A stretch of DNA of 64,000 nt, from NCBI GenBank assembly GCA_030704615.1, contig CM060733.1:59954001-60018000 (forward strand). The letters run 5' to 3'. The notes under the pieces are model-generated. The model was not told where the DNA came from and did no database searches. It saw nothing but the letters and a program-made list of their open reading frames with translations. How positions within the stretch are numbered: the first letter of the stretch is position 1; every line of letters begins with the position of its first letter. Origin of the DNA: Takakia lepidozioides (Eukaryota; Plantae; Bryophyta). Below are positions 15,652 to 57,300 of the stretch, piece after piece. A program made the translations under genes and the position numbers.

Positions 15652-16483
15652 CCTTGGCTTGCGGTCCCAACACAATGGTACGCCCATCCTTTTCGGATAG
15701 TAGAACTGTACTGCTGCAAGTAGCTCTGACTCTGGCCACAGAAAGGTCCGACTTATGTCTTGCCTACCAGTAACCTGTTTTGCTCGAACATCGATAATAC
15801 TATGTCATTCACTCGTGTTTCCACGTACATGTATTTTTGTGTGTTGGAGGGTTCCTGTTTTTCTGCTCTCCCAAACTTTGCTTTCCTCATTCGACCCCCG
15901 GCAAGGAAATGCGGCGCCGCATTTCCAAGTAACGTCGTAGGTACTGGTAGATGCGGCAGTCAGCAACACCAAACCGCCCAGAAATTTCGCACGTGCGAAC
16001 CCTAATACGGCACCGCATTTCCCAGTTCACTTGCAAAACTTTCCCGCCGAATACTGGAAGATGACAGAATTGTGCAGACTCTATTGGTTCAGTCGCGGCA
16101 AAAGGGTCAGCTTCATTCCAATGTTAAGGCATGTAAAACCGCGGAATACTCTATACAGGCCAGTATGCGACGTCGTTTTGCAGTGGTATACTGGATTTCT
16201 CGTTGCACGGTCACTCATTTCCATGAGCGGATCTAAAAAACCATGAGCGGAGTTGTTACTGACGACATATCTTTGCCGCATTACAGGATCCGTAACTTCC
16301 AAAAACGGCAAGGTCAAATATAAAACTATTATTTTAATACTTGTTTAATCTGCCGCATTTCCAAATTTGGAGTCCGCTCATGAAATCCGCGTGTCTTAGA
16401 CTTCGGCTCACCGCTCATGCGGCTCATGGCTCATGGCTCATGGTTTCTACTCATGAAATAGTAAACCTCCAAATCTTTATAAA

Positions 16484-16524
16484 CCCTAGACTAGTTTCTC
16501 ACAGCACGTGAGCTCATCAGTGGG
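16484..16524 (-). ncRNA. Minimal type I hammerhead ribozyme (degenerate stem II)
   Basis: ccca CTGATGA gctcacgtgctgtga GAAA ctag TC taggg. Confidence 0.7.
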
Positions 16525-17636
16525 AAAGAAAAGGAATGAGATACAAACCCCACCCCCCGCTTATATACTACTAGGAGTGAACTGCCTCGTGTGGACAATC
16601 TTCCAGTGGATGTCTCGTGAGGAGAAAAACCATCCAACAAATGTCTCGTACGGAGAAAATCGTCCAAAAAGTCTCGGTGGGAGAAAGTCATCTAGTGGAT
16701 GAAAACAAATTCTCGACAAGAGAGAACCAGATCCAAAGAATAAAAATCATCCAAACAGACAATTGCATATCTCTCAAATACAACTAACTCCGTGAGTTTA
16801 TGACTATGCAACAACCAATTACGCTGAAGTTAGAGCATGTTGTGAAAAGTCATAAGGGCTAAAACCACTTCGAAAGGAACGCAAAACCCGTAAGAGCTTT
16901 GCACACGCAGACCATCGTGCAACCATTGTCTTGCTAAAGCCTGCAGCTGTGTTGTCCTTAACGTGTCCAACCACGATCCCCACCTTCCGACCTCCAAGAA
17001 GAAACACGGCTCGGTCTTCGTATTGTTGCTTCATCAAATGAATGAGCAGCTTGGTCAAAAGAATGAAGATCAACATCTGCCTCCATTACATGAAGGCGAT
17101 TAAATATGCGTTGCAGCTAACACTATAAGAAAGTTTAGGGTTCACATAAAGTGTCAAAACAAGTGTAGCAGTACAACGCGGATGCACCGGGTGCAAGATA
17201 AACACAATCCGGGCAAATAAGTTTTAGGGGGGCCAGTTATGCACCCCTGGAAAAATTTCAGATCCTGTGAATCAAACCTGAAAGGAGAGATCCTGAGAGA
17301 CAGAAAACTAGAATAGAAGTATGCGAGGTGTCCTGAAATGCAACTGCAAACCTATGCAAGAGGCAAATGTGCGTATGAGAACTATTTCACTGGATGCACA
17401 GGAGAATAGAACCCTATCTCTGTTTTGCAAGAGAATGGACACACTAGGAACAACTTAGATGCAGATCTCACATGCACTACTCGAGAGGGAGTTTATGGCA
17501 TGCCGTATAGACACAGAGCTCATAACAATGCAATGATCTAAAGCAGGGGATACAAACGCATCTAAAACTCCACAACTTCAAAGGGTGAGACCACGAGGCA
17601 AGATCATGCAAAGTAGTGAAGCCAAATCCTTATAAA

Positions 17637-17677
17637 CCCCAGACTAGTTTCGCTCAGCACGTGAGCTCATCAGTGGG
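17637..17677 (-). ncRNA. Minimal type I hammerhead ribozyme, canonical
   Basis: ccca CTGATGA GCTCA-cgtgc-TGAGC GAAA ctag TC tggg: complete core, perfect stem II, palindromic mini stem III, GUC cleavage triplet, stem I ccca/tggg. Confidence 0.9.
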
Positions 17678-17800
17678 AAAGAAAAGGAATGAGATACAAA
17701 CCCCACCCCCCCGCTTATATGCTAGATTGTCCACACGAGGCAGTTCACTCCTAGTAGTAGATAAGCGGGGGGTGGGGTTTGTATCTCATTCCTTTTCTTT

Positions 17801-17841
17801 CCCATTGATGAGCCCACGTGCTGAGCGAAACTAGTCTGGGG
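17801..17841 (+). ncRNA. Inverted hammerhead copy (C3 changed to U; probably inactive)
   Basis: ccca TTGATGA gcccacgtgctgagc GAAA ctag TC tgggg, running directly into telomeric repeats. Confidence 0.7.
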
Positions 17842-18387
17842 TTTAGGGTTTAGGGTTTACAAAAGAGTGCAAACAAATACATGTAGCAGTGCAACAGAGT
17901 TCGAACCGCGAATGCACCGGGTGCATTAGTAGCAAAGTGCAAACAAGTTTTTTAGGGGCCAATTATGGACACCTTAGAAAACTTGTAGAAATATCTAGCC
18001 TGTGAATCAAAACTAAAAGAATCGATCGTGAGACACAGAAAACTAGAATAGAAGAGAGTGGGAGTGATGTTGCAACGTTCTAAAGTGCAAATGCAAAGAT
18101 ATGCAAGAGGCAAGTGTGTGTGATGAAACTAATTCACTGTAAGGACAGGAGAATAGTAACCTATCTCTAAGAAAGAGAATAGACACACTAAAGAACAGTC
18201 TTACAATGAGATCTAACATGCAACACTCGAAAATGAGTTTAAAACATGCACTACAATAGACACAAAGCAAATTAATGCAATGAACTATGCAGAAGATCAA
18301 ATCTAAAACTCAACAACAACAACAACAATGCCGCCAATGAGACAAAGAGACAAGAACACAAGATGCAGCAAAGCGAATCTCTATAAT

Positions 18388-18427
18388 CCCCAAACTAGTT
18401 TCGCTCAGCGCGTGAGCTCATCAGTAT
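18388..18427 (-). ncRNA. Minimal type I hammerhead ribozyme (weak stem I)
   Basis: CTGATGA GCTCA-cgcgc-TGAGC GAAA ctag TT tgggg. Confidence 0.75.
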
Positions 18428-19694
18428 GAAAGAGAAGGAAAAGAGATACAATGTGCACCCCTCACCCCGCTTATATACTGCGGAAAGTGAACTTGTCTCG
18501 GGGGGGGGAGAGAGAAAATACCTAATGGATGGAAAACATCCAAAATTGTCTCGGCTGGAGAGATCGTCCAACACATGAAAACTTAGATGAAAAACATCCA
18601 AAGTTTTCTCGGCAGGGGAGAAATATCCAACGCATGAAACTCTAGATGAAAAACATCCTAATGTTCTCTCCAAAATGGATAAACATCCAAACTAGAAGCT
18701 AACTGCATGTCTCAAATACAACTAGCCTCTAGATTTGTAACATAGCACGAACTAGATAGGAATGCAAGTTTCGTGCCCTCTTCCAACATACCATAGGTCT
18801 GTCAAAGGACGCTAACTGCGGGCTTTTTGCGGAACTTTCAAAAAGCCGCATGAAGTTTAGGGTTTAGGGTTTAGGGTGGTTAGCAAAGGCTTGAAAAGAT
18901 AACAAAAAGTAGAAAAAATACTGGAAAAAGACACAGTAGAATTTAAGGGGGGCCGGTTCGGACCCAAATACAAATGCAATGGAAACCAAGACAAATGCAT
19001 ACAAAGTGTGCCTATCGTGCCTAAAGGGATGCTATAAGACTATTATGTCTTATGCAAGGACTCCTGCCCTCACGAGATAGGGTTCTCTAATTGAAGAAAG
19101 AGGCACTTTTGCTCCAACCGTAAGCTTTTTTATGTTTGTTTTTCTTTGTTTAACGACAAAAATCTTGCTCACTATGGGCAAGCATGCGTTCAAGGTAGTC
19201 ACAAACATAGGGTCAAGTCTCAACCCCTAGTTGGAAAACTTATATGCCCCACCTTCAAAAAGAGATTCGTACCTCTAAGGAAGAATATGAAGGATTACCG
19301 CATAAGGTCATTGACGAGAAGGTTAGGTCGGCAGAGGCTTGCGCATGCCCATAGTCCTCTGATCGCTCGAGATGAACTCGAGGGAGGATCAACCAAGTCC
19401 CTTCTCTCCGACCATCGGGCGTACGACAAGGGAAACCGTGTAGTCGGGGCTAAATTAGCTTGCTCGACACGATTACCATATACCCCCAGCCGCCTTACCC
19501 ATTGTAAGCGGTGGCTAAGATGGCGTCAAACGGAAGGCTCTATACGCCCGTGCTTTGGAAAGAAAAAAGGCCTCGGAAGTAACCAAGGGTTGGGATTCCC
19601 CTCGGAGCCGAGCACCCTTTCGATCCAAGTTGTCCGGGCGGGCAAGGACTAGACTCTCGACTTCTCTAAATGTGGAGACACAAATGAGAGTTAA

Positions 19695-19750
19695 GGTGTT
19701 TTATTCCAAACAAGTTTCGTTTGATTGCTCAAGCTCATCAGTGGAACACC
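19695..19750 (-). ncRNA. Hammerhead ribozyme of the ORF-bearing Athena-like unit (different family)
   Basis: ggtgttcca CTGATGA gcttgagcaatcaaac GAAA cttg TT tggaataaaacacc; stem I ttcca/tggaa, with possible further ggtgtt/aacacc pairing. Confidence 0.7.
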
Positions 19751-20226
19751 AACCGAGCAAAATTGCTCCGAGCAAAATTGTTGAATTTGGTGATGATTGA
19801 AGATCAGGAAGGGGGAAGAGGACGAGGAATGTAAATGAGACCAAGGCCCAGGAGTTGTCGCTCCGCAAAGGAGAGAACCCTCTTGCTATAGTTGTGGATA
19901 GCAGTGTTGGTGACCCTGCATTCTACCTGGGAGGGAGTCTTCCTAGCAAAGAGCAACAAAGCGTATGCTTTCGGGTCTACGAGCGGGTACCAGAAAAGAC
20001 TCCTCGTGCGCCCCCGCGTCTGTGAGGAGGTACGTATGGCCGCTTCGTCTTCGTCGTTGTCGCACCCTTCGTCGTGGCCGGTTTTCCGTTGACCCTCGCT
20101 GAAGGTTTCCGGCCTCCCGTACCAAAACCGGTTGTGCGGTTCGAGCCTGACCTCTTGTTGAAGGAGGTAGGTGATGCAACAGAACGGGTGGAGACCCGGA
20201 TTCCTTTCTGCTGCTTGCCGTTTCCC
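19750..20226 (-). pseudogene. Penelope-like reverse transcriptase N-terminal remnant, entered by a -1 frameshift; RT core deleted
   Basis: The -1 frame is open from G GGA AAC (20226-20220) to IHNYSKRVLSFAERQLLGLGLIYIPRP*SSIITKFNNFAR, which matches the PLE N(L)S..L...E..LL.LGL.F.P motif. Confidence 0.75.
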
Positions 20227-21023
20227 GACTTTCCGCCACGACTCGCCTTAGGCTTACTAGCCGGTTTGGTCCCAAGCTTCTGGGCCTTAGGTTTCACCTG
20301 GATGGAATTCACCACCTTCTTCACCTCCTTGAGTACTTCCTTGACCACCACGCGTTTCACGAGGGTAGCAATGGAGGGTTCCACAGGGAGGGTCTCCGCT
20401 TCTTCCATAGCACCTTCTCGAGCAACGTTGCGAGCGGCGATAGCCGCAGCCTTGCTGACGTCGGAAAGTTGTTTGTGAATGAGAAATATATCTACATGAG
20501 TAACAAAGAGATTGTTAAGATGAAGATGCCACGACTCAATGGAAGACTTAGACTTGTCACCTATCAAATTTAAGGATCGTAAAGGCGAAATCAAATCCGA
20601 GAGGCGAGTCTCAAAGACCGGTTTCGATTGCTCGAGCTTGTGGGTCAAGCTAGCAAGACGAGTTTCTTGGGCTTTGATGAGTGCTTCAAAGCACTTGATC
20701 CGATATGCGGTTGTGCATTCGGCCAAGCTCGCATCAAGGACGGATTGGGCCTCAGGATCTCCTATTTGAAGTTTAGGAGGACTCATTCTAAGGGAGTTGG
20801 GTATGGTGCCTTCTTCGAATTGCACTCGCAATTTTTGAAGGTACTTGGAAGTCTTTTCATGCTCATGCCTAAGACTTTTGAATTCCTTGTCCGATGTGTG
20901 TACAAATGTAAGCAAAGGGGGAGGAATAGAGACATTCATGCTAAAAGAAAAAGACGCGGATGCATGAGAAGGGCCGACGCCTAAGCTAGGACATGGACGT
21001 TTGTTACCTGCTAGTTCCGCCAT
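19977..21023 (-). CDS. Athena-like ORF1: coiled-coil protein with basic C-terminal tail (348 aa, intact)
   Basis: ATG-initiated ORF with heptad-like helical segments and a K/R-rich tail; overlaps the RT frame; the ATG lies ~10 nt from a telomeric tract. Confidence 0.7.
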   Translation of the reverse strand: MAELAGNKRPCPSLGVGPSHASASFSFSMNVSIPPPLLTFVHTSDKEFKSLRHEHEKTSKYLQKLRVQFEEGTIPNSLRMSPPKLQIGDPEAQSVLDASLAECTTAYRIKCFEALIKAQETRLASLTHKLEQSKPVFETRLSDLISPLRSLNLIGDKSKSSIESWHLHLNNLFVTHVDIFLIHKQLSDVSKAAAIAARNVAREGAMEEAETLPVEPSIATLVKRVVVKEVLKEVKKVVNSIQVKPKAQKLGTKPASKPKASRGGKSGNGKQQKGIRVSTRSVASPTSFNKRSGSNRTTGFGTGGRKPSARVNGKPATTKGATTTKTKRPYVPPHRRGGARGVFSGTRS

Positions 21024-21033
21024 GGAAAAAAAG

Positions 21034-21590
21034 TTTAGGGTTTAGGGTGGTTAGCAAAGGCTTGCAAAGGTAACAAAAAGTAGAAAAAATACTGGAAAAA
21101 GACGCAGTAGAATTTAAGGGGGGCCGGTTCGGACTCAAATACAAATGCAATGGAAACCAAGACAAATGCATACAAAGTATACCTATCGTGCCTAAAAGGA
21201 TGCTATAAGACTATTATGTCTTATGCAAGGACTCCCGCCCTCACGAGATAGGGTTCTCTAATTGAAGAAAGAGGCACTTTCGCTCCAACCGTAAGCTTTT
21301 TTATGTTTGTTTTTCCTTGTTTAACGACAAAAATCTTGCTCATTATGGGCAAGCATGCGTTCAAGGTAGTCACAAACATAGGGTCAAGTCTCAACCCCTA
21401 GTTGGAAAACTTATATGCCCCACCTTCAAAAAGAGATTCGTACCTCTAAGGAAGAATACGAAGGATTACCGCATAAGGTCATCGACGAGAAGGTTAGGTC
21501 GGCAGAGGCTTGCGCATGCCCATAGTCCTCTGATCGCTCGAGATGAACTCGAGGGAGGATCAACCAAGTCCCTTCTCTCCGACCATCACA
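21034..21590 (-). repeat. Direct duplicate of the element 3' end (pLTR-like; copy of 18856-19415)
   Basis: Near-identical ~555 bp; both copies start at tttagggtggttagcaaaggc, and this one is truncated and capped by telomeric repeats at 21593. Confidence 0.9.
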
Positions 21591-22089
21591 AGTTAGGGTT
21601 TAGGGTTTAGGGTTACATGGCCATTCCTGCGAAAAGTGACCATTTTTTTTTCGTGTTTTGAGGTGACCTACCCCCCATTTGTGCATAATGTGGTTCCGAA
21701 TATGTAAAAATATTTCCCTATTGTATCATCATTCGTGAGATATGACACGTTTGACTTTTGACACATTTGGTTGACTTTGGCCTATATATAGCTTTTTTGG
21801 AATTTGAAAAGGCCTAGGTGGTAGTAGTAGGTATTATTAGGACAATGGTGGAAAAAGTTTGGCAAAAAGGTCAAAAAGTTGGCAAATATAGGCGTTTGAA
21901 GGCAAAACCCTAAAATGCCTATTGTGGCTAAATTTGGAGGTTGTTGGTGGTTTTGAATGGACCTATCCCCCCATTTAAAAGTATAAGGATTCCGAATATG
22001 TAAAAACATTTCCCCAATCCCTCGCCATTTGGGAGATATTAAGGAGTTGACTTTGGGTTGAGTTTGACTTTTTTGAATTTGGTCCAATT

Positions 22090-22920
22090 AAGGCAGCAAC
22101 TTTCAAAGTGAGATATCTTAAGCAAATCTTCGTCAATTTGGAAAGTTTAGGTGTCTATCTTGTGTAGTTTTTCTTGGGGAATCCAATGGTATGTGGCGCT
22201 CACCCTAATTCTTTGTAGAACTCTACTTACGAGCAACATTGTGAGGCGGACTTCTTTGTAGGATCAGCGACTTTCAAAGTGGTATATCGCGGCAAAATCA
22301 TGGTCGATTAGCAAGTTTGAGGTATGTATCTTGTGTGTTTTTTCATTACGCATCCAATGGTATATTGTGCTCGTTCTAATTCGTTGTAAATCGAAACTTA
22401 TGACTAAAAATGTGAACCTGCCATTTTTGTAGGAACTGCGACGTTCAAAGTGGCATATCTACACCAAATCTTGGTCGATTTGTGCGTTCAAGGTATGCAT
22501 CTTGGTCGTGTTTTTGTGTTGAATCCATTGGTATCTTGCCCATCTTCTAATTCGTCCTAGAACGGAAGATATGAGCAAAAACGTCAACCTGGTCTAAAAA
22601 GTCAGCAACTTTCAAAGTGCATTTTAGGGTGCTAATCTTGGTCATTTCTTTCATTCAGGGTATGCATCTTGTGCGCTTTTTTGTGGGGAATCCAGTGGTT
22701 TGCGGCGCTTGTTGTAATTCCTTGTAAAACAAAAGTTATGAGCAAAATAGTGAGTCGGAAACCCTTTTTAGTAAGGTGAGCGAACTTTAAGGGGTCATAT
22801 CTAGGTCAAATCTTGTCCGATTGGGGTAATGTTTATGTGCATATTGAGTGTTTTTTTGTTGCAAATCCATTGATATGTCTATCTTTTTGTGGGTCCTTCT
22901 AGATCAAAAGTTATGTTGAT
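22090..22920. repeat. Diverged ~171-bp tandem repeat (5 units)
   Basis: actttcaaagtg..atatct motif at ~22097, 22268, 22439, 22606 and 22783, with shared gaatcca(a)tggtat and ttatgagcaaaa blocks. Confidence 0.8.
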
Positions 22921-23031
22921 TTAATGAATCGGGTTCAATTAGGTGCTATATTTGGTCAATTCAAAAGTTGGATGTGTGTATTTTGGATAATTTCTTAATG
23001 TTATTTCTTCTTATATCGCAGGGTTGCCAAT

Positions 23032-24098
23032 ATGCCTCGTATGAAGTATACGGGGCCACTGATCGAGCTTGTCAGCTCGGACGAGGATGTACCAGCTCCA
23101 GTGAGGCCACCTGTTGCAGCTATGACGCCATCAGTACCTGTGGTCGATCTCAGCAGCTCAGACGAGGAGGAGGAGGTACTAGTATCTCCAGTACGGCCAC
23201 CTGTTGTTGTGCTGTTGCCATCGGCTGTTCCAGTGCGTCCGCCATTTGCTCCAGTGTGCCCTCCAGCTGCTTGGAGGCGGCCAGGACCTGCTCCAGTGCC
23301 TGAGGATCCTACTCTAAGGCGTTTGTACGCTCGTACACCGCTGCCCAGTCACGCGGCAGCTTATAGCATTTGGACCTTGACGCTGCTTGCTTCATGATGC
23401 TCACCAAAGATTTGCCGGACTTGTTTGGGATTATGGCCCGTCCGGCAAATGGGAAGGTGAGGGTCAGGGATCTTCCGGAGTTCAGTGATTGGTTGCATGT
23501 TATTTCGGATCCCATAGTGGTCAGGGTGTTTGCGGGGAGTGATACGGAGCAGAGAGACGGATTCAAGGCAGAGTTGGTAGATAGGCTACGGGTGGCGTTC
23601 GGGTTGACATTGACCTGTAGTACGGATAGTTCCACACTATCACGGAACCAAGTCAATGTTTCGGTTTCAGCCATGTCGCAGGCGCTTTATTCAGTAGGGG
23701 CTAGGGTATGTCGGGTTTCATTCTTCGGAATGAAATGGCAGATTCCAGATGTTGAGCCAGTGCTGGACCGGTTCATAGAGCGATATCGTGCAAAGATGGG
23801 TTCTTCTGTTCCAGTGCAGAAGAACCTATTTGATTATGGAGTCCGATTTCCTACAGATGGGTTGTTGTTCTTTAGGTTCAGTGATGCGCAGTACCGGGCG
23901 AGGAGGTATAGGGAGGGTACCGTGCACGAGATGTGCAACGAGGAGGGCTACGGGTCCGTGGATTTCAGGCCAGTTCTTGACTATCGCATAGCGAGGGTCA
24001 AGATCTACCAGGAGGTGTGTCACGAGATTCTCTCTGCGATACAAAGGCAGATGCTGGATCAGATGCCTGATACTAAGTGCGCAGTACAGGATCTGTGA
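23032..24098 (+). pseudogene. Frameshifted ORF of unknown function with SIM-like acidic motifs
   Basis: ATG at 23032 follows an acceptor-like ttcttatatcgcag. IELVSSDED and VVDLSSSDEEEE motifs and a Pro-rich linker; frame switch near 23370-23397 into a 242-aa globular region. Confidence 0.45.
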
Positions 24099-24920
24099 GG
24101 CAGCTACAGGATCTGCTCGACCGATGGGGAGCCATGACAGATGTTATGCGCAGCAGTCGACTGTCTGGCATCAGGGTTGAGATTACTGTTCAGACGGAGA
24201 TGGTAATTGACGGACGTCGGCTTTGCAGTGAGCAGGATTTATTTCGGATATGAAGCATTGAAACTGCATTGGGTGGGCCTTTTGACACTAGATCATTATC
24301 CATAGACATGTTCATGGAGTTTAGTGAGGTGCACGTATCAGCATTTGCAGCTACAGTTCACGGGAGAGATGAGAATCATCCATCTGTTGAGATACAGAGT
24401 GCTCCCACCTTTGCTCGCCAGGGTTAAGGGTTTAGGGTCTATAAAAGAGTGGAGACAAATGTAGCAGTGCAACAGGATGCGGACCGCGAATGCACCGGGT
24501 GCAATAAGAACACAATCCGAACCAAAAAGTTTTTAGGGGAGGGCCGGGTATGGGCGCCTTGAAAAAACTTGTAGATATCTAGATCCTGGGAATCAAAACT
24601 AATGGCGTTTATCCAGAGAGACAGAAAGCTAGAAAAGAAGTGTTGTTGAGATGTTCTAAGATGCAACTGCAAAGATATGCAAAGAGGCAAATATATGTGA
24701 TTGAAACTATTTCACTGAGATGACAGGAGAATAATACCCTATCTCTTTTGCTAGAGAATAGACACACTAGAGAACGACTTAGATGCTCATCTAACACGCA
24801 ACACTCGAGAAGGAGTTTAATGCATGCAATAGATGATAACAAACCTAAGGCTCAACAGCATAGAAGAAACATTGAGACAAGAACCCTTAGATGCAGAATA
24901 GTAGCCAATCTCTATAAAGT

Positions 24921-24960
24921 CCCAGAATAGTTTCGCTCAACAAGTGAGCTCATCAGTGGG
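24921..24960 (-). ncRNA. Minimal type I hammerhead ribozyme
   Basis: ccca CTGATGA GCTCA-cttgt-TGAGC GAAA ctat TC tggg. Confidence 0.75.
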
Positions 24961-25861
24961 AGAGAAATGGAATGAGGTACACAGAGCCTTACCCCCAGCT
25001 TATATACTGCTGTAAGGGGTTGTCTCAAATAGGTACAAGACCAAAATAGGTAAAAGAAAGTTATTTCTATGTCTAGAATATGACAAAGTTTTTTTTTGTG
25101 TCTAAAAAATAACTTCATGCCTAAATTAAAAAAAGATAATTTTTAAAGCCTAAAACTGGCTTGACAAAAATCAATAATATCTCTCCAATATAATTGACTC
25201 TATTGTAACTTGACTCAAGCACGATAGGAATACAAAATCCCTCGAGTCTTTTTTCAAACTAAAAGTTTGTAGAAAGAAGGTAACTGCAGAACTTTAGCAA
25301 AGTACTAATGAAGTTTAGGGTTAAGGACGTCCCTAAGGTTTAGAATAGAACACATATGAATGTTCAAGCTTTAGAATCAGAGGGGTCCACTTGCCGGTCA
25401 ACTTCTGAGTAGGTTGACAAAAAATTGGAACTATAAATGTAGCGGTACAACAAATTCGAACCGCGAATGCACCGGGTGCAATAGTAGCACAGTGCAGACT
25501 AAAAAGTTTTTAGTGGGGGCGGTTATGCTCCGAAAAAAACTTCAAGATATCTATTGAAAAACTCAAAGAGATGATTCTGAAGACAAAAATGTAGGATATG
25601 AATGATGTTGATATGTTCTAAAGTGCAATTGCAAAGACATGCAAATGACTAAAGTGTATGACTGAGACTGTTTCATCGTAAATACAGGATAACAGAAACC
25701 TATCTCTTATGGAAGAGAAAACACACACTAGAGAACAAACCTAGCAGCAAAGGCAAAACTAGACAGACAGTCTAAACAATACAACTGTAAGGTACAACAA
25801 CACAAAGGAGAAAGTGAGACAAAACACACTTATATGCAGAATACTAGCAAATCTTTATAAG

Positions 25862-25902
25862 CCCCAGACTAGTTTTGCTCAAAACCTGAGCTCTTCAGTG
25901 GG
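25862..25902 (-). ncRNA. Hammerhead ribozyme, core-mutated (GAAA changed to AAAA)
   Basis: ccca CTGAAGA GCTCA-ggttt-TGAGC AAAA ctag TC tgggg. Confidence 0.65.
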
Positions 25903-26049
25903 AAGAAAGAAATGGAGTGAAGTACAATGAGCCTCACCGCCAGCTTATATACTGTCGAAGGATTTTAATATACTGTCGACAGTTGCTTTGAGACGTTGCA
26001 ATATCGTAAAATCCTTCTTGTATTGTATGAAAGAATTGTCCAGTAACTT

Positions 26050-26400
26050 TTGAGCAGCCTCCACAAAGGTAGGAGTGTGATCCCGTTTGTTGAAAAACAT
26101 GCCCACTCGTGGTCTCGAAGAAGAACACTCCCGAATTGTGTACGGCTTCCTGCTTTAGAAAGTATCATTACAGACGGTCGTGACATTGTAAACGCTCGCT
26201 TCAAGGATGTGGTTTGCTCTGCCTTCAAGTCCTCTATTTGAGGTCATCTCAAGACCACAATGCGTGCTCTGACTACAGATGACTCCATCGTCATCAATCC
26301 CGCGGACAAAAATCTTGGGTTGGTGATCATGCGTAAGGATTGGTACATGAATTAAAATCGGCCACAAACAACATCTCTGTCAGGTTCAATCCACACTTAC
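26050..26400 (+). pseudogene. Penelope-like RT fragment (opposite strand to the hammerhead units)
   Basis: TMRALTTDDSIVINPADKNLGLVIMRKDWY matches the PLE L..D..IVIKPADKN.G.V.M...Y motif; in-frame stops. Confidence 0.75.
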
Positions 26401-30395: not shown

Positions 30396-33300
30396 GTGCG
30401 TGGTGCTCCTAGCCAACCACTACCTCAATGTGCTCAAGGCAACAAGGGGGCTCGGGTGAAGCTCAGGGAAGGGCAGAGAGGACCTCAGATGCAGGGGTCT
30501 CTCCCTTCATTTGCTGGCCAACAACGGGCGGCTGTGGTGTGCTGGACATGTGGAGGACTGCATGTCAAGAAGGATTGCCCAGAGGGAGGCAAAGGGCCGG
30601 CACATGCACAGCCTGCACAGTTGCAGTGTGGGCATTGTGGCAAGCACGGGCATGGAGAGGCCCAGTGTTATGGTTTGCATCCTGAGTTGCGCCGAAGCCA
30701 GTTCCAAGGGAACAGTGGTGGCCGGGGGCAAGGTGGAGCAGCCTGGAGAGGACGAGGTGGCCAGGCACGAGGTGCAGGCCAAGGGCAAGCTCAACATGGC
30801 CAAGGACGCGGAGGTCAGGGTGTTGACCAAGGCATGGCCAACCAGCTTCAGCAGCTAGAGCAGAGGCTCGCTGCCATGGCTACAGCTCAGGTGGTACCGG
30901 CTCCAAGGCCGGATGGTCCACCTCCTGCTCCTGAGGGAGGAGATATGGGAGGCATGGGATTCATGTGCGGAGCAGCACTACCACTAGTGCAGGTGGAGTC
31001 TGCTGCAGCCGTGACTCGAGGAGCAGCACGAGTTCCTGAGCCACGAGGTGTAGAGGTGGAGTTGGATCCACAGCGTGGGGAGGCAAGCCGTCAGGCTAGG
31101 CTCCCTCAGTCATTCACATTGGCGGAGACAATGTCGACGCCATCCATGGCACCTAGTTCTCGCCCGACAGTTACCGAGGTGGAGGTTACTATGCCATTGG
31201 GGAGAGCTACATGGGTAGCACCACTACCTAGTGTTGCCAAGGCTACAGCAGCTAGTGTACTGCTGGGAACGGCCACATCTGTGTGCCAGGCTCCATTGTT
31301 CTCGGCTACCATGATTGCGACGCCGGGGGTAAGACCAGCTGAGGTGTTCAGGCTGGCAGCTACACTCTGTGAGAGTGGGGAGGTTACTTTATCTTCTGCG
31401 GAGATAGTGGGAGGTGTAGTATCGGAGGGATCCTCGGATTTGAGGGTCAAGACTGCCACGGTGGCGCCATAGCAAGCTGCAGCTGCCAGGTTGATGGAGT
31501 TGCCAGCTAGGCCAGCCATTGAGCGCGCCATGGTGACACCTGGAGTTGTCATGTTAGACAACCGGGATGGCATTTTCTGTTTGAGTGGACCGGCAGACAA
31601 GAGGTACCGGCCACTACGGGTCTTGTTGGACTCGGGAGCTCAGCCATTGATGCTGGGCAGAGCTGCTATTGCAGGCTTGGGCCTCACGGAGGCGGATATG
31701 GAGCCTTGTCCTTTCCAGATACAGACGTCTCTGAGAAGATCGGAGCAGGCTCGGGGCATGACACCGCGTGAGTTGGCTATCAGACTACGGCCGGATCACC
31801 CTACAGATGGCTCAGTGATGCGAGCCAAGGCCATTGTGACAGACGCAGTCTCATATGATGTCCTGGTTGGTGGGGCAGTGTTGTACCCCATGGGCTTCAC
31901 CCTGGATTATTGGGAGGAGTCAGCTTCCTATAGGCCTGGATGGCAGGCAGGGGAGGGCCGGCGTGTGCAGCTCCCTGTGACGTTCATAGGAGGAGTTGCG
32001 GTTGCCCAGCGAGGCAAGATACCGACACTAGCAGCATTCACAGCGGCAGTGAGTTGGCCTGGAGAGTTGCTTGAGGGCAACGCTCATTCAGAGGATGTGC
32101 CACCTCCATGAGAGCATGATGATATGTATGGTATGGCGGAGTTGCCTGCCATGGTTGCTCAGACTCCATTGTGGGGCACGAGCAAGGATTTGCAGCGGGT
32201 TGCTGATCACGGGTGTAACAAGTCTGGGTGGAGGCTTTGTACCATCAGGAGAGGAGGAGAGTGCGGGGATTGCACCAGGACCACCTCAGTTGTCTCCATT
32301 GGACACCACACCTATTTTGTGGTAGTATCCGGATGAAGACATTTGTCTTCTGGACTTGTTTGGCGGGATCAGCACCGGATTAGCTCCTGTGTTACAGGCA
32401 GGTGTACGAGTTTGGCGTTACCTGTATGTGGAGAGGGATGAGACTGCACGACGCGTTTCACTTCGCCATGTTGCTAAGTTGGTGCAGCGGTACCCTGAGT
32501 TGTTGCCGGTGTCTGCAGTTCGTGGATATCAGCAGGCCTTGCCAGCAGACATTTCGTTGTTGGGGGCGCAGGATTTGGAGCGGGTTGGCTCCATTGATCT
32601 GGTAGTGGCAGGTTGGCCCTGCCAAGGGCATTCATCAGCCGGGCATGGCAATGGATTGCGAGACTCGAGGTCAGGTTTGTTTTGGGAGATGGTGCGGGTT
32701 TTGCGCCACTTGCAGCTTCATCAAGCTGTATCTCCAGCATACATCTTGGAGAATGTGCCATTGATGGGCGATTCTCGGGCCAGGGTGATGGCCAGTGTGC
32801 ATCAAGTCCGGTCGTGGCTTGGGTCAGCAGTGTTGCTAGATGCAGCTACAGTGGGGTCACGGGCTCATTGTCCACGGCTATGGTGGACTAACTTGATGCC
32901 ACCCGCACTGCTCAAGCGTGCATTTGATGGGGTGCAGCGGCCAGCACATCTCACAGTGGATAGCATTATGGACACAGGGAGGCAGTCTCAGCGTGTGAGA
33001 CACGATGACCGTTCGCCTTTGGCAGTGGTCAACAAGGTGGGTCAACCACGAGCAGCATTACCTACACTGCTCAGCTTCCCAGGATCGTATGCTTTCCGGG
33101 ATAGTGGACTTGGCCTCCTGTGGGATGCTCAGTTGCAGTAGTTAGTGGAGCCTAATGCTGACGAGCGTGAGCGGGCAATGGGTTTTACCACTGGTACCAC
33201 GGCGGTGTCGTCTCTTTCTGAGGCATCACGTCGTCAGGTGTTGGGGCAAGCAATGGATCTCAATTGCTTGACCTGGACTATTAGCTTGGCTATGGCTGAG

Positions 33301-52845: not shown

Positions 52846-54318
52846 GGCGGCCTGCTAATACGAGCCCTCAGAGGGAACTGATAGTGCAGTACTCATAAGG
52901 AAATTTTCGCCTTTGTTGTGGTGCCTTCCTCGCAGTTCCACATGTAAGAGCCACCTCAACACCTTCGTTCCTTTTCAGAACCATATCTTTGACTGGCAAC
53001 CTTTGAGGACACCACATTTCTGTGGAACTATCGTACACATACAAGCTACAGGTCCAAGAACACATCGTCGTGTGCTGTAAGCCAGTTACCAGAAAGAAGG
53101 CAAGCCCGCATGTTTATAAGCAGCAAGCCTGACCGGCCTGAAGCCTTTGCGGCCAATAAATCCATATCAGCTGTCGCATACAACATATTCAACCCATAGT
53201 CGCGACAATGTTGAGGTGTAAATCGTTTTCCTCTTGAACTGGCCCACACAATCTGGAAAATTCATCCTTGCCATAACATTATTCACCCTGTCACCAGGAA
53301 ATCATTGTGCCATGGGCCTCCAATCCCCCCAAGCGGCATTCAATCCAAATTCTCCCGGTTTCAGATTTGGACAGCAACCTCTCTCAAACCTGACCAAAGG
53401 TTCAACCACGAATGCCAAGGGTACGGAAAATCTCAAAACCTGCTATAAACTCTCTCCGCCATTCTGAGTTGCTCTCCCACCACCTCTCCATCGCATGTTC
53501 TTACACATGATCAACGCGAACATTCACCACGCATCACAGCACGCTCGAAGCGTTGCAATCCAACCTCGCATCGCCTGGCCACAATACGCACATCGTTTTA
53601 ATGCACATTGTGCAACCTCAGTGATTCAATCCCCTACGCATTCCGATCCGAGTGATGCGCACAGATTCTATTCAAGAGCATGAAAATCTCGCCTGCCACC
53701 CTCCAATTCCTCGCCTGCCTGCCTGCCCTCTCACAGGGTTTAGGTCATGCCCCCACATGCATGGCATCCCATGCCTGACAACCAATCTATTATGAGCTCC
53801 CGGATGAACGTGCACGATCATCCACCAACGAACCCCTCTGGCATAACGCGGCTAAACCAGTTTAGCCAGAACTGCGCTCACGGACGAAACTCAACCTTCG
53901 TCCGTCCCATCCGCTCCCAACAGAATCCAACATTCATCCGTCCCAAGATAACGAACGGATAACAGGGGGCTTTACAAAAAGGAACACGAGTGGCCCGCGC
54001 CCCGCCACGACCACCCGTCACTTTTCGGGGTCGTATCATACCACACGCTGTGCGGGCTATCGCCATGTATAGCCCCATCGTCACCTGGGATTGGGCCGTG
54101 GCTTGGGACGTGGCGGCAGGCTGCTGCAGACTGGCACGCAGGCCACAATGGAAGAAGAGTGCACGACAGGGGACCAACAAGGTGGGGGTGGCCAGGGAAG
54201 GGGGATGAGGGGAGGGAGAGGGAGACAGAGGGAGACTAGGGAGAGAGAGAGATGTTTGGGATTGTAGAAGAGGGAGAAAAAGAGAAAGGAGAGGGAGAGG
54301 GAGAGGGTGACTCCCGGG

Positions 54319-57300
54319 ATGGCGAGTGGAGCTTCGTTTCTGTCTGCGGAGGGAGCAGCGGCGGCGGCGGTGAGTGCAGGAGGAGGGGCGTGCATAGGGA
54401 CAGGGACAGCGGTAGGACAGAGTGGGAGAAGGAGGGGGGGGAGGCTCAGGCACAGCGGGCAGGGGCAGCAGCAGCAGCAGCAGCGGGGCGGGGAGGCATG
54501 GGGGGGAGCTGTGCAACGTGTGGCAGTGGGGACAGGGCGGGCTCCAAGTGCAGGCTGGGGCTGGGCTGGGACGCAGCATAGTGTGCAGGCGCAGGGGGGG
54601 TTGAATTCGGAGTTTTGTGGGAGGAGGTCTACACGGCTGGTGTCCAAGTTTCACCATGGGCGGCAGAAATTGTATTTGGGGAAGCACAGTCCTGAAGCAG
54701 ATATGGCCGCTCAGGAGATTCTGCAGGCGCCGTCTGTGAGGAACACCTCGGGATTGCTTGACAAGTGGTGCCACCAGCTGGTTGGCTTGGAGGATTTCCC
54801 CTACCTTCTGCGGGAGCTGGGGAATCGAGGTGAGTGGGAGAGGGCGTTGCAGAGTTATGAGTGGATGGTGCGGCAGGAGCACATCAAAAGTGAGTGGAGC
54901 AAGCTGGCAAGTATCATGATAAGCACTCTTGGGCGGTTGGGGAAGGTGGAGATTGCTCAGGAGGTGTTCAATAGGGCGCAAAAGGTCGGGTTTGGGAATA
55001 ATGTGTACGCGTACTCAGCTTTGGTTAGTGCGTACGGCCGCAGTGGAAGATGCGGTGAGGCACTGAAGCTGTTTCACTTGATGAAGAAGTGTGGTTGCAA
55101 GCCCAACCTTATCACCTACAACACTGTTATTGATGCCTGCGGGAAGGGTGGAGTAGACTTGAGGATGGCTCTTGACATCTTTGATGAGATGCAGCGGGAA
55201 GGTGTGGAGCCCGACCGCATTACTTTCAACTCTCTCATTGCCGTGTGCAGCCGAGGCAGCCTCTGGGAGGAATCGCAGCGAGTGTTTGCTGAAATGCAGC
55301 GTCGGGGTATTGAACAAGATATTTTCACCTACAACACTCTCATCGATGCAGTTTCCAAAGGGGGCCAGATGGAAATGGCTGCCACCATCATGTTGGACAT
55401 GCGGCGCAAGGCAGTGAGTCCCAATGTGGTCACCTACAGCACAATGATTGATGGATATGGAAAGCTTGGGTGTTTTGAGGAAGCCATTAGCTTGTATCAT
55501 GAGATGAAGGAGGCTGGCATTCGGCCTGATCACGTCTCCTACAACACACTTATTGACATTTATGCGAAGCTTGGCAGGTTTGAGGATGCTCTGACTGCAT
55601 GTAAGGACATGGAAAGGGCTGGCTTGAAGGCAGATGTCGTCACTTACAATGCCCTGATAGATGCACATGGAAAGCAGGGAAATTATGAGGAGGCAGCATG
55701 CCTGTTTGAAAAGATGAAAGGGGAGGGGCTCGTTCCTAATGTGCTCACTTACTCGGCCCTGATTGATGCTTACTCCAAGAGAGGCATGCATCAAGATGCC
55801 AAACAGGTCTTTGGGGAGTTCAAGAGGGCTGGACTTAAGCCCGATGTTGTTCTCTACAGTGCACTAATTGATTCGTATTGCAAGTGTGGTTTGGCTGAAG
55901 ATGCCACGGAGCTGCTGCAAGAGATGTTACAGGCCGGCATCCAGCCCAATATCGTGACTTATAACTCTCTCATTGATGCATATGGTCGAAAGAGCCAGGT
56001 AATCATTTTAATCTCTATATGGTGCAATATCTATGCAGCTTACTGCTATCCTTGTATTGCCTGTTAGCTCTGACTTAGTTACAAACTCCTTTTCCCCAAT
56101 TGGCATGAATAATCACTGTATTTGTTGTGGGTGGCAATCTAAACTGAGTAGTATCTTTCAAAGCAGTGTATTTTTGTAAAAATGCAGTTGCTAAGAGGCT
56201 AGTGGGCAGTGTGTTGTAATTACCACACTTCTTTCTGTCTGTATGGTTTAGAGTAGATTAAGCTTGTTGGGCATCCGTATGTTCTCCAGAGTGTTGATTG
56301 TTGTTGGCTCGTGCAGCTGGACAGCATGGAAGTGATGAAGGGGTCCAAATCAGCTCTCTACAGATGTGGAAATGAGGGGCATTTGGATTTGGAGTCTGGA
56401 AACAGAATGCAGCCTTTCCAAGACAATTCTGGGGAGCGTACCATATTGGCTGCTGTCAGAGTATTCCATGAAATGCAGCAGTTTGGATTGAAACCAAATG
56501 TGGTAACATTTTCGGCCATCCTCAACGCCTGCAGGTGAGCACAGTCAGAATCCCCATGCACACACCTTATATTTTGTAGGAGCCCCCTACATCACAGTGG
56601 ATTGAGAGTGACATATATTCAAGTGACCTTTTTCAGAGCATCTGTGAAGGCTGGGTTAAGCTGTCCTGGAAAAGATTTTGAGTGTTTTAACTCCGAAGTC
56701 TGTAGCGTGGTGTTCTGTTCAATTCTTACTAAGGCAGCAGCGTGGGCCATACTGAGCGGCCCACATACACTCTAGTCTATGCAGCCCTGTGAAGTGTGGA
56801 GGATATATTTGAAATGACATGCTAGAAAGTGCCTAACGGCAGATATGGAGTACATAGTAGGTGCTAACATCGCAGGTAATGTATTTGGGGCAAAATGTAG
56901 TCGATGTGCCTCATTGCAGGAGGCATCACTGTTGCTGGATGAGATGCGGTTGTTCGATAGTCGGGTGTATGGCGTGGCTCATGGGTTGCTGATGGGTTCA
57001 CGTGAGCGGGTATGGAGGGAGGCGGAACGGCTTTTTGATGAGATAGCGCAATTGGACTATGCTACTGGTGCTGCCTTCTACAATGCTCTCACCGATGTGC
57101 TCTGGCATTTTGGCCAGGTACTGCTCACAATTTGTGCACATCCTTTAATGGATGGGTGGAGGAGAATTATCCTCATGGTCCCCTTGTCTTATCTTCTTCT
57201 TCTGTGGATCAAACTTGTTGAACCATTCCCTTACTATTTTGATTTCATTTTTTGTGAAGGCATTAGTAGATGAAATGTACTCTTCAGTCTGGTGCAAGAA

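Follow-up and report, generated by a model that had tools for sequence, protein, structure and literature searches.

Hammerhead-bearing units of Penelope-like elements between telomere-like tracts in the bryophyte Takakia lepidozioides

A preliminary description of a 64,000-nt stretch of the Takakia lepidozioides genome (GCA_030704615.1, contig CM060733.1, 59,954,001-60,018,000 of the forward strand; this whole stretch is called the window, and its coordinates are used here) reported five related units that carry hammerhead ribozymes and end in telomere-like repeats, and took them for a separate non-coding family of "telomeric retrozymes." How did such short units come to stand in a row, some with the same ends, and are they a family of their own? 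Our analysis suggests that endonuclease-less Penelope-like elements (PLEs) of the Coprina/Athena kind form a fossil chain here, set head to tail and built by reverse transcription primed by the telomeric G strand, a reading to which we give a probability of about 0.7. As judged from the sequence, two families are present: family B, which is coding, and family A, which is present only as a segment of ~1 kb between two element-encoded telomere-like tracts. Of these tracts, the one internal to the reverse transcriptase (RT) coding sequence is designated T1 and the 3'-terminal one T2.

Units, tracts and shared ends

Unit homology was assessed by MAFFT alignment and repeat analysis of the window. 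This revealed five homologous units (U1 to U5) on the minus strand, spanning 16465-25975, in the order previously described: motif AGTATATAAGC (short form TATATAAG), a type I hammerhead, a body of ~540 nt and one to three CCCTAAA repeats. The distance from TATAAG to CUGAUGA was 45-51 nt in all five. Pairwise identity among the units was ~70%, and the promoter/ribozyme parts of U4 and U5 were 94-96% identical. The units and the inverted pieces beside them are as follows.

25313..25975, minus strand: U1; 5' break just upstream of the TATA box; TATAAG ~25949; hammerhead core 25898, inactivated (G12 changed to A); an extra ~75 nt ahead of the terminal tract 25322-25313
24415..25312, minus strand: U2; begins directly after the tract 25322-25313, with a start homologous to that of U3; TATAAG ~25004; hammerhead core 24956, intact, predicted cleavage after 24925; terminal tract 24438-24427, with degenerate repeats continuing to 24420
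17840..18856, minus strand: U3; remnant of an RT C terminus at 18854-18729, ending ..CWKRARNLHSYLVRAMLQI-stop; TATAAG ~18475; hammerhead core 18424, weak helix I, H17 = U; body, then tract 17859-17839
17131..17839 (unit proper 17131..17723), minus strand: U4; 5' truncation point 5 nt ahead of the TATA box; TATAAG ~17719; hammerhead core 17673 with helix II GCUCA/UGAGC and palindromic ACUAGU, the best in the locus, predicted cleavage after 17642; body, then tract 17142-17133
16465..17130, minus strand: U5; 550-nt 5' region beginning after a tract; TATAAG ~16565; hammerhead core 16520, helix II destroyed; cut off by unrelated sequence ~25 nt past the cleavage site
17724..17845, plus strand: inverted promoter-hammerhead copy, 122 nt (-75 to ~+10 relative to the cleavage site); complementarity 97% with U4 and 95% with U5; C3 replaced by U
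26149..26361, plus strand: inverted PLE RT fragment, stop-containing; profile positions 92-161, with the PADKNLG motif; ~170 nt beyond the U1 5' break

The hammerhead pattern CTGATGAG..GAAAC gave five minus-strand matches where 0.09 would be expected by chance, corroborating the earlier report that the units bear hammerheads. Between 16.4 and 26 kb there are six cores, including the U1 variant core CTGAAGAG, plus one inverted copy. Telomere-like 13-mers (CCCTAAACCCTAA-like) were matched 10 times (0.1 expected). All C-strand telomeric tracts of at least 10 nt in the same interval (seven of seven) lie on the minus strand, which is the sense strand of the elements, and the single polarity noted at the outset was thus borne out. 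Six of these tracts close a PLE-derived unit; the seventh closes a spacer, X, which is described below.

At 18855 (U3) and 25313 (U2), homology starts at the first base past the tract, and the two units have identical 5' and 3' ends with unrelated flanks. The proposal that unit ends are homologous and nonrandom holds for this pair but not for U1 and U4, which lack the fixed 5' end; each is broken close to its TATA box and borders on an inverted PLE piece. The piece beyond U1 was recognized by hmmsearch with a profile of 75 RT homologs (independent E value [i-E] 8.8e-15) and by tblastn with P0022 (42% identity, E 2e-10). The inverted 122-nt copy adjoins the 5' break of U4 and is fused to G-strand repeats through motif GGGGTTTA, which follows the cleavage site. 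The missing remainder of U5 was not found on the far side of the neighbouring insertion.

The RNA right after the family-A cleavage site, UGGGGUUUA, is G-strand-like (17839-17848), and family B has no such motif. It is exactly through this G-strand-like motif that the inverted 122-nt piece meets the C-strand repeats, a join that priming by a C-strand 3' end at this point would produce.

Clustered units that are ~30% diverged might also be a repeat made at the DNA level, by segmental or satellite duplication, to which the tracts are incidental. We consider this highly improbable. The flanks of homologous units are unrelated, the unit boundaries coincide exactly with tracts of one polarity (7/7), the 5' extent varies among units as it does among truncated cDNAs, and a coding PLE of the same architecture lies within the chain.

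The reverse transcriptase remnant and the internal tract T1

Inspection of U3 revealed that its first ~120 nt encode the C terminus of a PLE RT. In tblastn, P0006 matched over residues 589-616 (E 7e-5). The RT profile matched the 5' region of U3 at positions 554-598 in a six-frame search of the whole window (i-E 7e-4), and at positions 558-598 when this region was searched alone (conditional E 5e-8). This remnant keeps an open frame over 42 codons, up to ..PMVCWKRARNLHSYLVRAMLQI-stop; the stop comes right after a ..LVRAMLQI motif, the TATA box follows ~250 nt later, and no endonuclease follows the remnant.

The tract at the 5' junction of the unit falls at a motif of intact plant RTs, G-x-T-L-N-P-(K/T/R)-L. 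Here T1 encodes T-L-N-P-K-L and is written as telomere repeat, ACC CTA AAC CCT AAA C. The 5' boundary of U3 lies 44 codons before the stop, compared with 41-45 codons for T1 in five intact RTs. T1 was compared in six intact plant RT open reading frames (ORFs):

Selaginella (L006): 16-nt perfect tract
Logan run (L010): 16-nt perfect tract
Cryptomeria (L011): 13 nt
Logan run (L012): 14 nt
Logan contig of family B, from this species or a close relative (L001): 13 nt
Logan runs (L008): two overlapping partial repeats

Five of the six ORFs have the codons ACC CTA AAC CCT, and L008 has ATC CTA AAC CCA. CTA makes up only 3-9% of the Leu codons in these ORFs, and codon choice is varied at the conserved Leu and Asn positions nearby; the chance of the T1 codon set is 0.002-0.009 per ORF. 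Because CTA is rare and the neighbouring conserved codons have varied, the codon pattern indicates that T1 is conserved at the nucleotide level.

Homology and position identify the family-A units as the T1-T2 segment of an endonuclease-less PLE. They are not an independent non-coding family, as had been supposed, because the 5' part of U3 is an RT C terminus and its boundary is T1, a stretch of RT coding sequence in intact plant PLEs. For the same reason, namely that the 5' boundary tract is RT coding sequence, the fixed unit ends can be explained without a circle.

The coding element, its promoter and the ribozyme

The family-B element sits between family-A units. It and the adjoining features are as follows.

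18857 to ~21032-21040, minus strand: family-B PLE, internally deleted, endonuclease-less
21023-19977, minus strand: ORF1, 348 aa
to ~19765, minus strand: start of the RT, first ~54 codons, with motif LSFAERQLLGLGL; then a junction with a 12-nt duplication
core at 19741, minus strand: hammerhead, helix II mutated; then a 3' region of ~860 nt
18877-18855, minus strand: 3' tract, 23 nt
21033..21592, minus strand: 5'-truncated copy of the family-B 3' region, 555 nt, 97.7% identical to 18862-19416, with a 16-nt tract T2 at 21048-21033
21615..24414, no strand assigned: spacer X, 2.8 kb, between two clusters, with 171-nt tandem repeats at 22094-22915

The N terminus of the family-B RT was confirmed by a match to the RT profile at 19932-19729 (i-E 5e-13). 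By its layout, the 555-nt copy with its tract upstream of ORF1 is identified as a pseudo-long terminal repeat (pseudo-LTR). The intact arrangement is visible in Logan contig L001, which is 96% identical to the copy in the window (93% for the ORF1 protein). Its order is the end of the RT ORF, a box TCCCATATCG resembling an upstream sequence element (USE), 28 nt, TATATAAGG, 46 nt from TATAAG to core, the hammerhead, 860 nt, ACCCTAAACCCTAAAC (T2), 9 nt, the ORF1 ATG and then ORF2 (RT). Helix II of the L001 hammerhead is perfect (GCUUGA-GCAA-UCAAGC). A more distant plant relative (L007/L008), whose RT is 53% identical, is arranged likewise, and there TATAAG and core are 47 nt apart. The TATAAG-to-CUGAUGA distance is thus 46-47 nt across three plant PLE lineages with no other DNA similarity.

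A search with L001 ORF2 retrieved the PLE RTs of Cryptomeria, Selaginella and Ginkgo, with E values down to 1e-160. The top RT homologs are 490-658 aa long and lack the endonuclease domain PF01541, which was seen only in distant endonuclease-bearing matches. Pfam analysis found no domain in family-B ORF1, L001 ORF2 or the ORFs of spacer X. Taken with the RT remnant and the family-B element, these homologs substantiate the link to endonuclease-less PLEs that had been drawn earlier. Derivation of family A by deletion from the family-B element of the window was considered and rejected; beyond the tracts, the two share no more than the ribozyme core of 13 nt and a single match of 17 nt.

Several further observations concern the region around the promoter. 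The family-B deletion (19745-19775, minus strand) joins RT codon ~54 to a point 33 nt after TATAAG, the expected transcription start, and its junction shows TTG-G-GTT microhomology and the 12-nt duplication. It may reflect a template switch at the 5' end of the RNA, or a coincidence. The USE-like box of the two coding families (TCCCATATCG, L001 360-402; GTCCCATAATCA, L007 2413-2460) is of the plant snRNA type; its start precedes that of the TATA box facing the hammerhead by 39-40 nt, a spacing between those of RNA polymerase II and polymerase III (Pol III) promoters. A Pol III-type USE-TATA promoter was dropped for family A: of its copies, only U5 and the inverted piece show a USE match, and a weak one, and the body has T5-T7 runs at which Pol III would stop. 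A second conserved block, GGGCATATAAGTTTTCCAAC, occurs ~400 nt before T2 in family-B 3' regions (window 19240-19260 and 21400-21420; L001 935-955, L002 120-140, L003 35-55). It has been kept even though the corresponding ORF1 is only 43-46% identical to that of the window, and it may serve as a further promoter or as a recognition site for the RT.

Spacer X ends in a 22-nt tract (21614-21593) whose polarity is that of the PLE units. The RT profile detected no similarity to PLE proteins in it in the whole-window search, and its plus-strand ORFs have no detectable homolog; for the ORF at 23370-24098 there was no PDB match, and Atlas gave sub-threshold hits only.

The hammerhead of the units consists of the core CUGAUGA, a 5-bp helix II (GCUCA/UGAGC), GAAA, the cleavage triplet GUC and a two-part helix I, with helix III reduced to one base pair within the palindrome ACUAGU. 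It is of type I, with an open helix I. Only U2 and U4 passed a strict descriptor; the others are impaired by the loss of G12 (U1), a weakened helix I (U3), the loss of helix II (U5) or the C3 change (inverted copy). No unit matched an Rfam hammerhead model at gathering thresholds, and the sub-threshold scores (22.6 versus 52 bits for HH9, 20.1 versus 48.5 bits for Hammerhead_3) are as expected because helix III is minimal. Across seven PLE lineages the core is constant, helices I and II vary by full compensatory changes, and helix III is mostly a 6-nt palindrome (ACUAGU, ACAUGU or ACCGGU). This pattern of variation identifies the motif as a real PLE-type hammerhead, of which most copies at the locus are dead. 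We do not claim covariation in the distal stem of helix I within family A, where the pairing of a CU-rich with an AG-rich strand allows several registers.

Two relatives show other uses of the telomere repeat. In L010 (220-255) helix II reads GACC-CUAAA-GGUC, so that the ribozyme of a plant PLE itself holds a CCCTAAA unit; this element has only the RT-internal T1 and no T2 tract. A metagenome scan with the family-A ribozyme pattern gave no further family-A copies, its matches being a PLE of an unrelated organism (L004, L005). In that PLE (L005 1790-2110, also L004; a circular or tandem contig with a 77-nt end overlap), the hammerhead is nearly identical to that of family A and lies 36 nt past the TATA box. 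Its ORF1 contains a long Asn-Pro run written in CCCTAA-type repeats, a second case of telomere repeat as PLE coding sequence.

The ribozymes also bear on the proposal that the ~1-kb units are a self-propagating non-coding replicon. Hammerhead-to-hammerhead RNA of adjacent units would circularise, or the RT would jump end to end between cleaved RNAs; a G overhang would then prime at the now-internal tract, and one turn would yield a permuted copy complete with promoter and ribozyme. With the promoter-ribozyme module internal and the tracts bounding the unit, any transcript from the module must cross a tract, and the same ends and unrelated flanks of U2 and U3 imply that each is an independent insertion. 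Palindromic helix III, which Cervera and De la Pena read as a sign of dimer-forming ribozymes (PMC4209133), suggests dimeric ribozymes as in tandem transcripts, and animal non-LTR retrozymes have been proposed to be PLE passengers that spread via circles (PMC7229834; bioRxiv 10.64898/2026.07.22.740005). Relatives L007, L008 and L010 are cyclic unitigs (prefix equal to suffix, 29-30 nt), although such unitigs cannot tell tandem DNA from circles. The Cryptomeria element L011 is a genomic tandem with a period of 4330 and 99.2% identity, in which T1 is the only tract; in T1-only lineages, a tract-primed copy could regain an intact RT only if copying went on past one unit of its tandem or circular template.

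Set against these points, the fixed 5' end is already accounted for by the RT-encoded T1, and three of the five units (U1, U4 and probably U5) are built differently at the 5' end. Nowhere at the locus are both ribozymes of an adjacent pair intact, and the U1 ribozyme, which forms one end of the 940-nt example offered for such an RNA, is inactivated. The ribozymes of these copies decay like neutral sequence. We regard a self-propagating replicon as unlikely. Equally doubtful is a broader version, in which plant endonuclease-less PLEs would replicate as permuted units with T1 as the primer site in the RT coding sequence, the RT being regained by more than one round on tandem or hammerhead-circularised RNA; T1-T2 pieces keeping promoter and ribozyme would then be a heritable, protein-free "telomeric retrozyme."

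Construction of the chain and comparison with known elements

Endonuclease-less PLEs are known to attach to G-rich overhangs via C-rich repeats in their RNA, and most of their copies are 5' truncated, capped by short telomeric stretches and arranged in head-to-tail chains (PMC8557442, PMC6431247). For the Takakia chain we envisage that a G-strand end anneals to T2 of the RNA, with the RT supplied in trans, and that the cDNA would extend back over the body, the hammerhead, the TATA box and the RT C terminus. Once T1 was copied, the 3' end of the cDNA would consist of two telomere repeats, a legitimate chromosome end on which capping, extension by telomerase or priming of the next element could follow. 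If an end at T1 is usable in this way, truncation would be favoured there, and T1-T2 pieces of ~1 kb with fixed ends would pile up. The layout, with the promoter-hammerhead module downstream of the genes, implies that transcription starts in one unit and passes through T2 into the next, after which the ribozyme would trim a short capped leader. Templates would carry tracts internally because transcripts read through them. T2 stands at the pseudo-LTR/ORF1 junction, 9 nt upstream of the ORF1 ATG. The RT of a canonical PLE initiates internally on its RNA, near the pseudo-LTR/ORF junction (PMC11167929), and internal tracts in the templates would, by analogy, be in line with such initiation. The locus shows the PLE hallmarks of a pseudo-LTR (97.7% identity) and inverted partial copies; the latter, next to pseudo-LTRs, are a recognized feature of PLEs (PMC8557442).

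Ordinary genes and other transposons flank the array. The window also holds an intact fragment of a GUN1-like PPR-SMR gene (54307-56067), whose protein is 76% identical to that of Physcomitrium and 74% identical to that of Marchantia, with 85% identity to Sphagnum along a part; matches of this kind, best in mosses and liverworts, mark the host as a bryophyte. An ORF at 32356-33141 has a C-5 cytosine DNA methyltransferase domain (PF00145, E 8.5e-13). The locus appears interstitial, possibly an internalised end, and the chain is either a fossil turned internal or was built at an internal break.

Under the second possibility, the array would have arisen by capture at internal double-strand breaks or interstitial telomere-like repeats, where both DNA ends prime on RNA (twin priming) and inverted pieces result. 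The flanking genes agree with this, as does the way the inverted 122-nt piece joins C-strand repeats via GGGGTTTA after the cleavage site, which is what would be expected if a C-strand 3' end had primed. However, the uniform polarity of all tracts and units is a prediction of successive terminal additions, a later rearrangement could equally internalise a chain, and inverted partial copies are a general PLE feature (PMC8557442). We hold internal capture to be a possible but rather unlikely origin.

Some points weigh against construction from T1-T2 pieces at a chromosome end. The apparently interstitial position is not explained by purely terminal addition. The tract at which U2 and U3 start was assigned to T1 by homology and position, and a full-length family-A parent was not seen; the RT remnant of U2 is too decayed for protein detection, and ~230 nt of U5 after its tract do not align to U2 or U3. 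Family A lacks extended similarity to family B of the window, and no RT donor was identified here. One truncated copy that propagated later could also give two identical breakpoints.

Among known systems, the locus is most readily compared with the endonuclease-deficient PLEs Coprina, Athena/Terminons and those of Selaginella. It resembles them in having a PLE-type RT without GIY-YIG and an upstream coiled-coil-type ORF1 (PMC8557442, PMC6431247, PMC4209133), a type I hammerhead and reverse-complement telomere repeats at the 3' end. It also resembles them in its head-to-tail chains of mostly 5'-truncated copies with short telomeric tracts between, and in its inverted copies and pseudo-LTRs. In Athena, the tract comes immediately downstream of the 3'-terminal hammerhead, whereas here the two are 0.5-0.9 kb apart (~540 nt in family A, ~860 nt in family B). 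The locus differs from Athena and Coprina further in the TATA box 46 nt upstream of the ribozyme, in the second tract, which is conserved coding sequence in the RT ORF and would mark a preferred truncation point, and in its bryophyte host and apparently interstitial chain.

Metazoan non-LTR retrozymes are likewise protein-free, hammerhead-bearing, related to PLE pseudo-LTRs and presumably copied by PLE RTs, with a minimal palindromic helix III. They consist of short tandem monomers with abundant circular RNA, whereas the units here are heterogeneous PLE tails of ~1 kb with an RT remnant, bounded by tracts. Plant LTR retrozymes share with the locus a plant host, a non-coding nature and a hammerhead with a promoter beside it. 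However, their type III hammerheads lie in true LTRs, with a primer-binding site, a polypurine tract and a Gypsy RT, none of which is present here; no LTR pair flanks any unit.

The telomere-specific HeT-A element of Drosophila has a 3' promoter that drives the downstream neighbour in a head-to-tail array ("promoting in tandem"), and the TATA-hammerhead module implies a like logic. HeT-A itself is a non-LTR element of the jockey clade; it carries an oligo(A) tail and has neither a ribozyme nor telomerase-type repeats. In Anolis Poseidon, a canonical endonuclease-bearing PLE, reverse transcription starts within the template near the pseudo-LTR/ORF junction, which is where T2 lies here (PMC11167929). 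There, the primer is an endonuclease-cut target with no homology to the RNA, whereas the presumed primer here is a telomeric G strand complementary to the tract.

In reviews, plants are said to have few telomere-associated retroelements, Selaginella being the usual example (PMC12477314). The statement in the preliminary description that nothing of the kind had been described in plants was too strong, since endonuclease-less, telomere-associated PLEs with hammerheads have already been described in Selaginella (PMC4209133, citing Gladyshev and Arkhipova 2007; PMC12477314). The telomere-priming model, the 5'-truncated, telomere-capped chain pattern of Athena and Coprina and the status of animal non-LTR retrozymes as PLE passengers are also already known (PMC7229834; bioRxiv 10.64898/2026.07.22.740005). 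In the literature compared, which excluded the primary accounts of PNAS 2007 and MBE 2017, we found no codon-conserved T1 as a preferred truncation point, no fixed TATA-hammerhead module after the RT gene, no ribozyme-tract gap of 0.5-0.9 kb and no bryophyte host; an earlier description of T1 is possible.

PLE reverse transcriptases are the closest relatives of telomerase. The Takakia locus extends the endonuclease-less, telomere-associated PLE system to a bryophyte, and it adds two features. The first is T1, which Selaginella (a lycophyte), Cryptomeria (a conifer), the bryophyte family and three further relatives all keep as RT coding sequence; with it, a cDNA left incomplete would still finish in a proper telomere. 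As the second, a fixed promoter-to-ribozyme module follows the genes. Should T1 act in the proposed way, it would show by what means these elements avoid harming chromosome ends and would account for the short ribozyme-bearing tail pieces that dominate the chains. It would also offer a simple handle on the long-standing question of why PLEs occur as partial tandems.

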